DNA of 63,376 nucleotides, the filler included, from Octopus bimaculoides (lineage: Eukaryota): NCBI RefSeq assembly GCF_001194135.2. It is 11 parts of 10 records of this genome, joined end to end, with 100 filler letters (N's around TTAATTAATTAA, not from the genome) between each part and the next. Parts side by side here need not be neighbours in the genome. Positions count along the whole stretch, not along the records: positions 52,298 to 56,073 come from NC_068983.1; 10 more parts are not named here. One strand, given 5' to 3'. The notes below the pieces were generated by a model that saw only the letters and a list, made by a program, of their open reading frames with translations, was not told the DNA's origin and made no database searches. The translations under genes and the position numbers were made by a program. Positions 52,298 through 56,204 of the stretch are shown here, piece after piece (the first letter of the stretch is position 1; every line of letters begins with the position of its first letter).

Positions 52298-52334
<37 letters not shown>

Positions 52335-52439
52335 AGCAAAGCCCTGCTTACTTATATTTATTATTCATATACTGTATTCCCTTTCTAACCAAAGATATCT
52401 CAATTTCAAAATAACACTCTGCAAAATTCTTGATTGTGG

Positions 52440-52482
52440 ATTGGACGAAATGATTTGATACGCTTAGCGAGCGTATAAAAGG
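52440..52482 (+). promoter_or_regulatory. Putative core promoter of the CCP gene: inverted CCAAT (ATTGG 52440-52444) and TATA box (TATAAAAGG 52474-52482)
   Basis: Consensus TATA ~100 nt upstream of the ATG, with an ATTGG box 30 nt upstream of it. Confidence 0.55.
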
Positions 52483-52580
52483 CGCACTAAAACACACTTT
52501 GAAATTAAAACGAGTAAGCAGCTACACTTCAAGAACCATAGTCCTTTTCGTGAAAGAAAAAATTCATCAAAACTTAGAGA

Positions 52581-54062
52581 ATGGTATCCAGAAGATTTTA
52601 TATTATTTTCTTAATTATATTAACAGCGAAAAGTGAAAATATTACGTTGGGAAATGTTATGAAAAAGATTGTGTCGGAATACAGTAATTCGATGTCAACT
52701 GACAACAACTTCTCTCCGTGGTTTTTTGAACAAATGATAAAACTCCTAAACTGTGGTCCTTTACCGAAATTGAACAACAGTCGAATACAATATACTTTGA
52801 AATGGGAAGAGCAAAAAATACACCTGCAACAAAAGTGCAACCGCTATTTTGAAGCAAGCGTAGAGAATACGTCCGATATTATTTGTTGGAATGGTAAATG
52901 GATGTACGAAGATAAAAAATGTAAGTTAATAACCTGTCCCATTTTTCATAAACCTGCACACGGTCTCATGATAAATGTTGCATACACATATAACTCTGTT
53001 ATTCACTTTTCCTGTCCTTCTGATTATATTTTGCGAGGAAACGATTCAATGCGGTGTCAAGAAAATCAGCAGTGGTCGTCTCTACCACCAGTTTGTGAAA
53101 TTGTTAAATGTCTCCCACTGCATCCACCCAAACATGGCAATATAAACAATACAAATGAAGTTAAAGTTAACGAAATAGTTTCTTTCACTTGCTTAAAACC
53201 ATATAATGTGAAAGGTGAATCTGTATTAACTTGTCTTCGAGACGGTAACTGGAACTTTCCGACACCTGTTTGCACTTTGAAATGTGTCGTACCTGAAATT
53301 GCTGGCAGAGTTGTGACTATTTCTGAAGGTACAATTTTAAAACCAAGAACCTTTATCAATCAAGGAGGGAAAGTGTTATATTCTTGCAAACGATCTTTCA
53401 TTCCTGTTACGTTTGGTGTCGTTCAATGCTTGTCGGGTAAATGGTACCCAGACATACAGTGCAGAAAAACGTGTAAAATTGAGAAACTACATGGATTAAA
53501 TTTTATTTTGTCACATAATTTTTCAGTTATTGAATATAGCTGTTCAGCAGTAGAAACTTTGTTGGGAGATTCTAAAAGAACCTGTTTAGAAAATGGAACG
53601 TGGAGTGGAAAACTTCCACGATGTGTAAAGAACTGTCAATTGTTACCCGGGTTTGGCATACATAGCTACCGGAATTCAGACACTTTGAAATATCTTCCGT
53701 TTGGCAGCACAGTCACAGAAAACACGAATGTTACTTATTCATGTCAATATCCTTATGTGAATAACTCCACCGATACTGCGATATGTCAAAATGGTGTATT
53801 GACCCCCAAACCACACTGTTCACATCCAAGTATTCGGCTGATAAATTCCAGAGTCATTTTTACTTATGAATCGTCAGAATATCATGTTTGTGAAACAAAA
53901 TACACTTGCAAATTTTTTGGTTACAGACAGAAATCATGCTACCACGAAAACTGTTTTCATGGTGACTATGAATGTGTCGAAGTGGGTTTTAACAATGCAA
54001 CATCAGAAATATATGTTGGTTCAATAGTTGATGATTGTTGTGTTATGCAGTGTAATGATTAA
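52581..54062 (+). CDS. Intronless secreted sushi/CCP-repeat protein (6 CCP modules + C-terminal Cys-rich module), 493 aa
   Basis: Uninterrupted 1482-nt ORF in unique sequence. Signal peptide MVSRRFYIIFLIILTAKS. Six C..C..C..W..C modules at aa ~58-114, 119-172, 177-231, 235-294, 298-348, 352-413 (e.g. CPIFHKPAHG..FSCPSDYILRGNDSMRCQENQQWSSLPPVC; the sixth lacks the Trp). About 10 N-glycosylation sequons. No TM or GPI tail. Confidence 0.93.
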   Translation: MVSRRFYIIFLIILTAKSENITLGNVMKKIVSEYSNSMSTDNNFSPWFFEQMIKLLNCGPLPKLNNSRIQYTLKWEEQKIHLQQKCNRYFEASVENTSDIICWNGKWMYEDKKCKLITCPIFHKPAHGLMINVAYTYNSVIHFSCPSDYILRGNDSMRCQENQQWSSLPPVCEIVKCLPLHPPKHGNINNTNEVKVNEIVSFTCLKPYNVKGESVLTCLRDGNWNFPTPVCTLKCVVPEIAGRVVTISEGTILKPRTFINQGGKVLYSCKRSFIPVTFGVVQCLSGKWYPDIQCRKTCKIEKLHGLNFILSHNFSVIEYSCSAVETLLGDSKRTCLENGTWSGKLPRCVKNCQLLPGFGIHSYRNSDTLKYLPFGSTVTENTNVTYSCQYPYVNNSTDTAICQNGVLTPKPHCSHPSIRLINSRVIFTYESSEYHVCETKYTCKFFGYRQKSCYHENCFHGDYECVEVGFNNATSEIYVGSIVDDCCVMQCND

Positions 54063-54109
54063 TGTACATTAAATTTGTTTGTTCTTGCTTGCAATCTTTA
54101 CATTCAGTT

Positions 54110-54137
54110 ATGACAACGTAATGGAAGTCGTTGTCAT
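54110..54137 (+). other. 3'-UTR stem-loop ATGACAACG-N10-CGTTGTCAT
   Basis: Perfect 9-bp inverted repeat with a 10-nt loop. A homologous hairpin ACAACG-N10-CGTTGT is at 55499-55520 in the paralog. Confidence 0.5.
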
Positions 54138-54698
54138 GTGCTTGTTTCTGACACTTATCGTAATATATATAATTGGAAGCAGACGTTAATTTAAACTCGA
54201 CTTATAAACCGGCCTTCCAGTCAAAACGAACACATCAGTAAACTGAGAAGACATTACTAACTACTTAAAATTGCGTTCGTTGTGGCACTCAAGTATCACG
54301 AGGATCTTTGATATTAATTTCTATTTATCATGTCTCAGGAGGATATGTTTTCAAGAGAAAGTATTTGAACTTTACCGGCAATTCCAAGATTAGTGTAGTA
54401 TAATTCATATGAGTTTTATATTCGTTATTGGCACTCTCTTTGCCACTTTCCCTCTCTCATTGCTGAGTACTTTCATGTGTTTACACAAATAAATTATTAT
54501 AATACTATCTGGCCCCGTGCCGACAAAAATGACGGCTAATTGGGTAATTTTTCAGAGTAACACCCGCACGATTTTCCCTAAAAAAAAAAAAAAAAACTTT
54601 TTTGTGTGGAATCCCTGACCTCCTAATAAGCTGCAAATTTCTTATTTTGGTTCAAGAAAAGGTAGCGGGGAGGTGCGAATGGGATCCCCTTCCCCCAC

Positions 54699-55081
54699 GG
54701 TCCCGGATTTATTGGAATTTTTTTTTCTCGTTGAATGAATTCCGGTGACATCCTAATATGCTAGAAAACCCATTTTGGGGTGCGAAAAACGGAGTGCGGT
54801 GAGGTGGAATCCTCGGTAATATCACCCACCCCTACTCCCATTGATCTTTTCACTAGCACGATTTTCACTAAGGAAAAAAATAAAAAACAAATTTCCTGTG
54901 AATTCGGGACAGATTTGCGTAACTCTAAAACCCCAACCTCTAACCCTGGAAAAATCAATGGGATGGGGTGGGTGAAATTTCCGAGGCTTCCACCTCCGGA
55001 CCCAAAAATGGTTTTGTAGCATATTAGGATGTCACAAGAATTCATTCAAAGAAAAATAAAATTTGCAATGAATCCGGAACC
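54699..55081. mobile_element. Foldback/MITE-like long inverted repeat (arms ~54699-54851 and ~54949-55081)
   Basis: TGAATGAATTC..GTGACATCCTAATATGCTA..AAAACC..GAGGTGGAA.CCTCGG.AAT.TCACCCACCCC..CCCATTGAT is mirrored on the opposite strand. The module GCACGATTTTC(C/A)CTAA+A-run occurs at 54566 and 54856. Confidence 0.7.
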
Positions 55082-55085
55082 TGAG

Positions 55086-55409
55086 GTTCTTACTCGTGTC
55101 AATCTCATTATAAGTATACACGGATTGTAATGTGTCGTGATGGTGTATTGACCCCACAACCACGCTGTTCATAGCTCATAGACTCTCAAGTCATTTTTAC
55201 CCATGAATCGAAAAAGTATTATGTTTGTGAAACAAAAAAAATATCCTTGCAATATTTTTGGTTACAGTCAGCAATCTTGTACTTTGATAGATTGTACTAA
55301 TGAAGGCTTGTATTTTTGTGTCAATGTAGGCTTTAACAATGCAACATCAGAATTATATATTGATGCAAAAGTTGTTGATTGTTGTATTTCGAAATGTTTT
55401 GATGATTAA
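55086..55409 (+). pseudogene. 5'-truncated pseudogenised paralog of the CCP gene (end of CCP6 + C-terminal module)
   Basis: Reads YSCQSHY..MCRDGVLTPQPRCS*LIDSQVIFTHESKKYYVCETK/KYPCNIFGYSQQSC..CVNVGFNNATSELY..VDCCISKCFDD*. Colinear with aa ~385-493 of the intact gene. In-frame TAG at 55172-55174 and a +1 frameshift in the A-run near 55234-55241. Homology continues into the 3' UTR. Confidence 0.85.
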
Positions 55410-56204
55410 TATCAGACTATTTTTTATTTGCATTTTAAATTTACATGTATGTTCTTGCTTGCAATAAAATGTATTCATTTGCATTAAATTCAGTTCAAAC
55501 AACGTGATGGAATTCGTTGTCGTTTCCCATATTTGCAGCTTTCTGACATCATTGTATAAATAGTTACAAACAATCGTGTAATTTAAACGTTTTTTAATAT
55601 TTAAAAAAAATTATTCTTTCATTGTTTCTACTTTTGCTTGTATTGTATTATTTTATGCTTTCCATCAAACATGGTTTATTATAATTGAATAATCACTGTG
55701 AAGCATTGATTTCTAGTGATTTGCCTTGCATTTACTCCGCATTGTTCTGGCCTTACCCACGATCCATTATGCAATAGTTTATTACATTTCCAAGTCTCTC
55801 GATGTTTGCTTCAATGAGCTCTTCATTACGTGTTTATGTAATATTTGTGTAAAGTGAGGGTGCTCAGCTCTAGTGAAGCGGTAGCATGATGTTTGTGTTT
55901 GTTTTGTAGTGCAAAAACATAGTTATTCAATATACTTTAGCGTTAGAAATGTTGTGTAGAGCCCGATTTATGCTTATCATATCTACAGTAAATAGGATTA
56001 TACATCATCAGAACCATAATTCCATTCACCCGCTTTTCAGTCAGATATACACATCACTAAATTAGAAGAAATTNNNNNNNNNNNNNNNNNNNNNNNNNNN
56101 NNNNNNNNNNNNNNNNNTTAATTAATTAANNNNNNNNNNNNNNNNNNNNNNNNNNNNNNNNNNNNNNNNNNNNTAGGGTGGGTGGGAGTTGAGTGGGTGG
56201 GTGT

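Follow-up and report, generated by a model that had tools for sequence, protein, structure and literature searches.

Results

Identification of the gene

The window analyzed here is a 63,376-nucleotide stretch of Octopus bimaculoides DNA joined from 11 parts of genome assembly GCF_001194135.2, and the subject of this report is an intron-free gene in the part at positions 52298-56073, referred to below as the piece. The piece holds one long open reading frame (ORF), 52581..54062 on the + strand, a complete coding sequence (CDS) that runs in a single exon from ATG to TAA and encodes 493 amino acids. An exact look-up places the gene on O. bimaculoides chromosome CM046603.1 (GCA_001194135.2) at ~98.29 Mb. 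The second-longest ORF of the piece encodes 97 aa, and the longest open frame in shuffled versions of the piece (n = 300) is 161 aa. At the 35% G+C of the piece a stop is expected at 7% of random codons, and the probability of 493 open codons by chance at this base composition is 1.7e-16. A first-pass annotation, made from the DNA alone, had reported an uninterrupted 1482-nt ORF at this place, and the frame from ATG to TAA is exactly as it claimed. Judged by its sequence, the locus is a real, intact and probably functional intron-free gene.

Domain organization of the predicted protein

The amino terminus, MVSRRFYIIFLIILTAKS|EN, has the n/h/c layout typical of a signal peptide when read by eye. 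Residues 1-18 (MVSRRFYIIFLIILTAKS; 52581..52634, +) contain two Arg, an 11-residue hydrophobic core (residues 6-16) and A-x-S ahead of the likely cleavage point, which the -3/-1 rule, applied by eye, puts after A-K-S. The top 19-residue Kyte-Doolittle window covers residues 6-24 (1.39) and every other window scores 1.29 or less. The hydropathy scan finds no transmembrane (TM) helix or glycosylphosphatidylinositol (GPI) signal in the 493-aa protein, because no other window is TM-like and the carboxyl terminus (..DDCCVMQCND) is hydrophilic and acidic. The signal peptide is followed by a family-specific segment (aa 19-57; 52635..52751, +) that is not CCP and has no Pfam match. AlphaFold2 (AF2) models helices at residues 21-35 and 46-56 of this segment with low confidence (predicted local distance difference test score, pLDDT, <50), and residues W47, Q51 and N57 are invariant in the family alignment.

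The center of the protein is a string of six CCP modules, each with four Cys at CCP spacing: CCP1 (aa 58-114; 52752..52922), CCP2 (aa 119-172; 52935..53096), CCP3 (aa 177-231; 53109..53273), CCP4 (aa 235-294; 53283..53462), CCP5 (aa 298-348; 53472..53624) and CCP6 (aa 352-413; 53634..53819), all on the + strand. The four Cys are family-invariant in 6/6 modules, and a Trp lies between Cys III and Cys IV in CCP1-5 and is missing from CCP6. Pfam Sushi (PF00084) matches the whole protein with E 2.9e-28 and 98.4 bits against a cut-off of 20.7. Scanned singly, CCP2 (E 1.1e-10), CCP3 (E 2.3e-11) and CCP5 (E 4.3e-6) are canonical, whereas CCP1 (Trp107; E 0.056), CCP4 (Trp288; E 0.031) and CCP6 (E 0.04) are divergent, with sub-threshold scores of 14-15 bits (E 0.03-0.06) and Sushi as their sole match. 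The six sushi modules claimed at first pass stand by cysteine spacing in every case, and the Pfam gathering score is reached by CCP2, CCP3 and CCP5 but not by CCP1, CCP4 and CCP6. CCP5 is the most conserved module of the family (78% mean identity), and CCP4 is also well conserved (71%) and poorly modeled (AF2 pLDDT <50).

The protein has 32 Cys and 12 N-x-S/T sequons; the first-pass annotation had seen the sequons and undercounted them at ~10. Its signal peptide, six CCP modules and absence of a membrane anchor are all borne out by sequence and hydropathy. Sequence matches in the PDB are to CR1, CR2, factor H, beta2-glycoprotein I (beta2-GPI) and CD46. The AF2 model built from the family alignment (mean pLDDT 69) shows strings of small beta domains, and Foldseek matches it to factor H, beta2-GPI and CD46 with E between 5e-18 and 1e-13. 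As modeled, these CCP beads would have the beta-sandwich fold of sushi proteins. The hidden Markov model score, the four-Cys modules and the bead fold identify the protein as a member of the Sushi/CCP/SCR domain superfamily.

The family is found in octopods

Single-sequence and profile searches of 5.8 billion proteins were used to define the family, whose members carry P numbers below. Family matches come from O. bimaculoides, O. sinensis/vulgaris and Argonauta hians only and score 522-1176 bits, with no family member below 582 bits in the profile searches; outside the family the top score, 89 bits with 21% identity, belongs to a factor-H-like protein of a fish. By these searches the family is restricted to octopods, and the gap in scores bears out the lineage-restricted, expanded secreted family proposed in the first-pass annotation. 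The family is small (~5-9 genes per species) and its architecture is fixed. The hallmarks are a signal peptide, an N-terminal segment with PW(F/A)xxQ, six CCPs and an 8-Cys tail with FG(Y/H/F) and a terminal CCxxxC, and the window protein has all of them together with the single exon and the family length of ~483-495 aa (alignments A1 and A2).

The closest O. bimaculoides relatives of the window protein are P0002 (87% identical, ~58 kb away and inverted), P0005 (66%, ~200 kb away) and P0007 (60%, on another chromosome), and the same genome has the partial models P0006 and P0020 and the fragment P0014. At least nine family models are present in O. sinensis/vulgaris and two in A. hians. The neighbor-joining tree joins the window gene to P0002 with 100% bootstrap and recovers (Ahia_P0010,(Obim_P0007,Osin_P0023)) with 99%. 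Argonauta P0010 groups with the Octopus genes P0007 and P0023, and therefore at least two intronless copies were present before the Octopus and Argonauta lineages separated. On the tree, the duplicate pair of the window gene and P0002 is specific to O. bimaculoides.

Family members carry the RefSeq names SVEP1, CUB and sushi domain-containing protein 3-like, complement factor H(-like), P-selectin(-like) and clotting factor C, and none of these names survives a test of membership. There is no family-level relationship to factor H or other RCA proteins beyond the shared domain, and residues 19-57 and 414-493 are not CCP. Selectins have an N-terminal C-type lectin domain followed by EGF, CCPs and a transmembrane anchor; Pfam finds only Sushi in the octopus protein, with no C-type lectin or EGF domain, and there is no TM segment. 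SVEP1 and CSMD3 proteins have several thousand residues, with vWA, EGF, pentraxin or CUB domains beside the CCPs; in the 493-aa octopus protein Sushi is the sole domain detected, with no vWA, EGF, pentraxin or CUB.

The gene models are already in RefSeq and UniProt, and the gene itself is not undiscovered. Literature searches that included RefSeq and UniProt accessions found no description of the family in the library searched. What appears to be undescribed is the family as such, its octopod restriction, its uniform intronless structure and its orphan, fast-evolving tail. The first-pass suggestion of an undescribed gene family holds in that no paper was found, and must be corrected in that members were already predicted in RefSeq under misleading names.

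Three database entries depart from the standard architecture. P0014 (UniProt A0A0L8G1T8, O. bimaculoides) is an intact ORF of 95 aa that comprises only the end of CCP6 and the full 8-Cys tail. Its start coincides with the Met-Cys position at which the fragment downstream of the window gene begins, and no contig placement was found; it may be a scaffold-edge artifact or a free-standing tail gene. P0008 (MetaClust UPI00071D9F29) is a chimeric model that runs from CCP4 of one copy into the 5′ untranslated region (UTR) and start of the copy that follows. P0025 (O. vulgaris CAI9716043.1, 787 aa) is a chimera of a tail-truncated family member and ~370 aa of unrelated sequence. Database users should not read P0008 and P0025 as real architectures.

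The C-terminal module has no detectable relative

The last 80 residues, referred to as the tail (aa 414-493; 53820..54059, +), form a module with eight Cys (437, 443, 453, 458, 465, 486, 487 and 491) and the F-G-Y/H/F motif. Cys437, Cys443, the F-G pair at 446-447 and the terminal CCxxxC are invariant in the family. In the full-length AF2 model the tail consists mainly of beta strands and one short helix (pLDDT 72-87).

When the tails of nine family members were combined in a profile (A2) and compared with the full set of 1.84 billion cluster representative proteins, only P0011, P0007 and the 95-aa P0014 were recovered; no relative outside the family was found among these representatives. Two candidate relatives, P0015 and P0016 (E ~7e-4), were rejected as 16-aa repeated stretches in unrelated repeat proteins. 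The tail has no Pfam match and no match in a profile search of PDB sequences. The idea that it is a cryptic seventh CCP was rejected by hhalign against a CCP profile built from the family, which gives a probability of 0.2%. The first-pass annotation had called the C-terminal module non-standard, and the lack of Pfam and PDB sequence matches and the profile-profile comparison with CCP agree with it. Folded alone from the nine sequences, the tail gives a low-confidence AF2 model (pLDDT 53) for which Foldseek returns nothing from the PDB below E = 1.5; this model is no evidence for a new fold. Cys458 and Cys465 are both missing from the O. sinensis protein P0004 and both kept in its close relative P0021. 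Their joint loss suggests that these two residues form a disulfide with each other, and the tail as a whole would be a four-disulfide module.

Selection on the CCP stalk and the tail

Comparison with Argonauta gives a ratio of nonsynonymous to synonymous substitution rates (dN/dS, ω) of ~0.3, with 0.23-0.29 in the CCP region, and the CCP stalk is under long-term purifying selection. The youngest pair, the window gene and P0002 (dS 0.06), has an overall ω of 1.16, with 0.75 in the CCPs and 2.45 in the tail. The first-pass annotation had named a dN/dS near 1, together with a lack of expression, as a point that would count against its proposal; the overall value is numerically near 1, but it is heterogeneous along the protein and CDS indels are scarce. 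The flanks of the pair differ by 8 indel events in 866 nt and the CDS by one 3-nt in-frame event in 1482 nt, against 13.7 expected (P = 1.7e-5). This strong deficit relative to the flanks shows a reading frame maintained by selection, with all 32 cysteines kept. Private replacements at otherwise invariant positions number two in the window protein (S128G and T199I) and one in P0002.

Nucleotide divergence between the window gene and P0002 is 3.9% in CCP-coding sequence, 4.5% in the 3′ flank and 17.5% in the 240 nt of the tail (tail vs 3′ flank, Fisher 5.5e-9). Polarized changes in the tail, summed over both lineages, are 31 nonsynonymous (N) to 2 synonymous (S) (binomial P = 0.024). The independent O. 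sinensis pair P0004/P0021 shows the same concentration, with 5.8% divergence in the tail compared to 1.3% and 0.5% in its flanks (P = 8.8e-5), and 11/11 differing tail codons are nonsynonymous with 0 synonymous. In 8/9 pairs compared, amino-acid differences are 2-4 times more frequent in the tail than in the CCPs. The tail is, by these measures, the fastest-evolving part of the protein, with amino-acid replacement that reaches or exceeds the neutral rate. Conversion by a distant paralog was examined as another origin of the hotspot in the window gene and P0002 and was rejected, as synonymous divergence of the tail is 0.09 within the pair and 0.76 to the next clade.

Detection of a family member in skin mucus

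The O. sinensis model P0021 corresponds to UniProt A0A6P7TXA6, has intact architecture and tail, and contains the digest peptides listed in PMC10138644. That study reports A0A6P7TXA6 in the skin-mucus proteome of O. vulgaris (Table S2, row 321) with 1 unique peptide, 1 peptide-spectrum match and 3% coverage, and its authors discuss the protein as 'complement factor H-like' (PMC10138644). CD109 and TEP1 are in the top 10 of the same table (PMC10138644). The listing is consistent with secretion at the skin, on thin data. The 'svep' markers of endothelial and hemocyte clusters in octopus single-cell atlases were considered as a second hint and set aside; they are not attributable to this family because many octopus genes are so named.

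Gene structure and duplication

The CDS is a single exon in 11/11 full-length copies fetched as DNA and in P0017, whose tail is frameshifted; the gene range is 3 x (aa + 1) for every one of them. The single-exon claim concerns the CDS and leaves room for an intron in the 5′UTR. A candidate TATA box, TATAAAAG, was read from the sequence at 52474..52481 (+), 107 nt upstream of the ATG. TATA(A/T)A occurs at ~75-105 nt before the ATG in 7/8 genes compared, including both Argonauta genes, and P0005 has CTGTAAAAG. The motif probably acts as a promoter element and its position would fit a short, unspliced 5′UTR. Downstream, a candidate poly(A) signal, ATTAAA, lies 6 nt past the stop (54068..54073, +) and is present in P0002 as well (alignment A4). 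A second candidate, AATAAA (54488..54493, +), is not conserved; P0002 has GATAAA and O. sinensis AATAGA.

Blastn defines a duplication unit at 52361..54726 that is common to the window gene and P0002 (L002 9777-12140) with 91.7% identity. The O. sinensis copies share it to ~54661 with 86-87% identity (blastn of the window gene locus, L001, against the other loci). The 2.4-kb unit spans from ~220 nt 5′ of the ATG, including the promoter, to ~660 nt 3′ of the stop. Because the unit includes the promoter and the 3′ flank, duplication at the DNA level is indicated, and the window gene is best described as a young DNA-level duplicate of an already intronless gene and not as a fresh retrocopy. The first-pass annotation had proposed a retrocopy-derived or lineage-specific expanded gene; the lineage-specific expansion stands, and the promoter and 3′-flank homology speaks against a retrocopy origin of the window copy. 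Intronless orthologs across molluscs, already annotated with this architecture, would by its own terms have refuted it; single-exon relatives occur across octopods but not across molluscs, and they already carry automatic RefSeq names.

A processed retrogene would be expected to lack introns, to share only the transcript with its source gene, to have a poly(A) tail and target-site duplications at its edges, and to have an intron-containing parent. Introns are absent from the CDS, but homology extends beyond the transcript, a downstream A-run belongs to a repeated element, and the searches of 5.8 billion proteins found no intron-containing parent gene. A run of 17 A residues at 54580-54596 was examined as a relic retro-poly(A) tail and rejected, as it lies ~85 nt past AATAAA and is followed by conserved sequence shared between paralogs. 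It was rejected as a transcript-end tail also because it is repeated at 54851-54886 within a local A-tailed element.

Neighboring copies and repeats

A 5′-truncated pseudogene of the family lies ~1 kb downstream of the window gene (55088..55680, +) and comprises codons ~383 to 493 and the 3′UTR, as defined by tblastn, blastn, repeat searches and 3′UTR insertions. An in-frame TAG (55172-55174) interrupts it, together with a 12-nt deletion and a 4-nt insertion near 55235. By blastn it is 75.5% identical to O. sinensis L008 20551-21101, and it has diagnostic 3′UTR insertions in common with P0017; it is the orthologous remnant of a P0017-type gene. In O. sinensis P0017 is the tandem neighbor of P0018 and is itself frameshifted. 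Because the pseudogene shares the 3′UTR insertions of P0017, the window locus corresponds in synteny to P0018-P0017, and most of its second gene has been deleted. P0017 (XP_029657165.2, L008 19355-20752) has a 1-nt deletion in the tail-coding part, ends ...FFGYRQNHAIGIVVGIIDVSK* and loses 5/8 tail cysteines; it is annotated as a normal protein and is probably a pseudogene.

Repeat searches identify a palindrome of ~380 bp (54699..55081) at the junction of the gene unit and the truncated copy. Its arms are 81 nt and 85% complementary, and its inner arms are 32 nt and 91% complementary. The palindrome may mark the deletion that took the 5′ part of the neighboring gene. The short A-tailed element is repeated either side, at 54561-54596 and 54851-54886. 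With 54520-55090 as the query, the first 142-207 nt (~54520-54726, within the duplication unit) recur outside L001 and the palindrome does not, among the loci fetched.

A second partial 3′ end of a family gene (L003 5351-6135, -; ~aa 315-491, ~55% identical to P0005) lies ~4 kb upstream of P0005 in opposite orientation, and tail-keeping fragments are thus recurrent in the cluster. The O. sinensis paralogs P0004 and P0021 (L009 10001-11735 vs L010 3001-4738) have a mosaic divergence profile, with ~9% at CDS nt 172-700, 0-3% from nt 700 to ~200 nt past the stop and 18-24% beyond. This mosaic suggests recent gene conversion between paralogs that lie on the same contig, and within the converted tract P0004 lacks the Cys458/Cys465 pair that P0021 keeps. 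Since the Octopus/Argonauta split the history of the family is one of birth and death, by tandem or segmental DNA duplication, occasional gene conversion and pseudogenization.

Rfam, tRNA and tandem-repeat scans of the piece returned nothing except a perfect (TA)17.5 microsatellite at its left edge (52298-52332), ~250 nt upstream of the ATG and outside the paralog-shared unit. A long array of degenerate ~100-nt repeats lies at L001 ~1350-2300, 8-9 kb upstream of the gene. It matches dozens of times, in either orientation, within each octopus and Argonauta locus fetched, which suggests an octopod interspersed or satellite repeat of very high abundance.

Discussion

Proposed function

The evidence is best joined in a single reading: the window locus is a functional intronless gene for a member of an octopod-restricted family of secreted, heavily N-glycosylated proteins with an extracellular recognition or adaptor role, to which we give a probability of roughly 0.55. 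The usual ligands of CCP strings are thioester proteins of the C3/TEP/CD109 type or glycosaminoglycans. The protein would be an extracellular molecule of beads-on-a-string form with a recognition or adaptor role, in which the conserved six-CCP stalk would bind a conserved host partner of one of these two kinds and the tail, as a fast-changing, cystine-stabilized head, would bind a variable target. The likeliest setting would be mucosal or humoral defense at the skin. The recognition or adaptor function is deduced from sequence features, and an immune or complement role is a further step of deduction. The hotspot in the tail is read here as probable diversifying selection on a cystine-stabilized scaffold, with relaxed constraint on loops as a partial alternative.

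Several observations weigh against this interpretation. Few synonymous sites (~45) are available in the tail, and for this reason the tests for dN>dS within it are marginal (p ~0.08 per pair, 0.085 pooled). In the single-copy orthologs P0007/P0023 the ω of the tail is 0.88 and its dS is locally raised (0.17 vs 0.08), so relaxed loops, or a higher local rate of mutation or conversion, could account for some of the hotspot. Along the window lineage there are 44 N to 8 S changes, compared to 28 N to 8 S for P0002 (p = 0.08), and a conserved sequon has been lost through T199I. The identification in mucus consists of one peptide, in another species, from a paralog other than the window gene, and the absence from decapodiform cephalopods is based on protein databases alone. 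CCP strings also serve in adhesion, synapse organization and reproduction.

The excess of replacements in the window lineage and the loss of its conserved NET sequon are also what would be seen if the window copy were a redundant young duplicate drifting to a pseudogene, with the near-neutral dN/dS (1.16 against P0002) as a sign of lost constraint. S128G, the truncated pseudogene in the adjacent tandem position and the frameshift in O. sinensis P0017 fit this explanation as well. It is nonetheless unlikely, given an intact ORF that keeps 32/32 Cys and carries a single in-frame indel where 13.7 were expected. Uniform decay also predicts a different distribution of changes from the one observed, in which they pile up in the tail (~4x the neutral level) while the CCPs remain near neutral, a tail-specific pattern that is repeated independently in P0004/P0021.

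A more specific alternative would make the protein the octopus counterpart of the vertebrate complement regulators factor H, CR1 and CD46, a soluble protein that binds C3b-like fragments and controls a C3/TEP opsonic system. Support for it comes from the top sequence and fold matches (CR1, CR2, factor H, beta2-GPI and CD46) and from the abundance of TEP1 and CD109 in the same mucus proteome that lists a family member (PMC10138644). The likeness is at the generic CCP level only (21-26% identity, with 89 bits for the best non-family match), the N-terminal segment and C-terminal module are foreign to RCA proteins, and octopod restriction and rapid turnover speak against a conserved housekeeping regulator, all of which makes this counterpart improbable.

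Rapid evolution and lineage-specific duplication are the usual signature of reproductive proteins as well as of immune ones. A secreted glycoprotein with lineage-specific duplicates and tail replacement at or above the neutral rate is as good a fit to a protein of the egg coat, oviducal gland, spermatophore or sperm as to an immune protein; in the former case the tail would mediate recognition of gametes or mates in a species-specific way. We consider this a distant prospect, as the sole protein-level hint comes from skin mucus and the sequence has no feature specific to reproduction.

The first-pass proposal of a recent retrocopy, processed from an intron-containing CCP gene, agrees with the uninterrupted CDS and with retroposition followed by tandem duplication as a documented route to intronless arrays in molluscs (PMC6896357), but it is highly improbable and already contradicted for the window copy by paralog homology that extends ~220 nt upstream of the ATG through the conserved TATA box and ~660 nt past the stop, by relatives that are all single-exon, Argonauta genes included, by the failure to find an intron-containing parent and by an A17 run that belongs to a repeated A-tailed element and not to a transcript end. 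Because the homology covers the promoter and 3′ flank, it is the recent retrocopy that is ruled out; an ancient founding retroposition is plausible.

The recognition or adaptor reading can be taken further to a tentative proposal, which we hold at low odds, of a previously unrecognized octopod class of humoral or mucosal recognition proteins, in which the six-CCP stalk would present a structurally new four-disulfide head that diversifies to track variable targets. These targets could be microbes or, more speculatively, conspecific or self surface cues in skin mucus. A speculative example of a self cue is the skin factor that reportedly keeps octopus suckers off the animal's own arms and is said to be still unidentified.

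Little is understood of cephalopod immunity and surface chemistry in molecular terms, and most lineage-specific octopus genes are uncharacterized or misnamed. The present family is a tractable case, with small single-exon genes that are easy to clone and express, a fixed architecture and a domain with no detectable relative, and the evolutionary signal singles out the part of the protein that would contact a changing partner. Should the tail turn out to be a new fold that evolves under diversifying selection, and should mucus or hemolymph be confirmed to contain the protein, the family would be an entry point to octopod-specific defense or recognition. The RefSeq names SVEP1, CSMD3-like, P-selectin, factor H-like and clotting factor C are corrected, as the orthologies they imply do not exist.

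Comparison with known systems

In its presumed mode of action the octopus protein resembles the soluble CCP-string proteins factor H, beta2-GPI and C4b-binding protein, and it is an ortholog of no named vertebrate protein. The vertebrate RCA proteins (factor H, CR1/CR2, CD46 and DAF) share with the octopus protein tandem CCPs, linkers of 3-4 residues, an extracellular location and glycosylation. There is no orthology, and the octopus protein adds a non-CCP N-terminal segment and an orphan 8-Cys tail, is encoded by a single exon and is octopod-only. Closer in layout is beta2-GPI (apolipoprotein H), a soluble plasma protein with a short CCP string and a specialized C-terminal binding module with an extra disulfide, which is among the top Foldseek matches over ~375 aligned columns. 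Its last domain is a modified CCP, whereas the octopus tail is not CCP (0.2%) and has no sequence similarity to it. The alpha chain of C4b-binding protein (C4BP) consists of a CCP string followed by a short, Cys-containing, non-CCP C-terminal region for oligomerization. The C4BP tail is helical, with ~57 aa and 2 Cys, whereas the octopus tail is modeled as mostly beta, has 8 Cys and is fast-evolving.

Among molluscs, the CCP-rich bivalve 'P-selectin' genes are a lineage-specific expansion that arose mainly by tandem duplication and were automatically named after vertebrate proteins (PMC9484242). The octopus genes are likewise molluscan CCP-repeat genes with a lineage-specific expansion and vertebrate-derived automatic names; they differ in that no bivalve protein is among their matches, the family is small, the architecture is fixed and the tail is an orphan. 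The intronless tandem arrays of expanded nicotinic acetylcholine receptor genes in molluscs encode an unrelated protein class, and a founding retroposition for the sushi genes is conjecture. In the FREPs of snails and the VCBPs of amphioxus, secreted immune recognition proteins of multigene families with birth-and-death evolution, a conserved scaffold is combined with a binding domain that diversifies rapidly. They share no domains with the octopus family, which is far smaller, and the likeness would lie in the same combination of a scaffold, a fast-diversifying domain and birth-and-death evolution.

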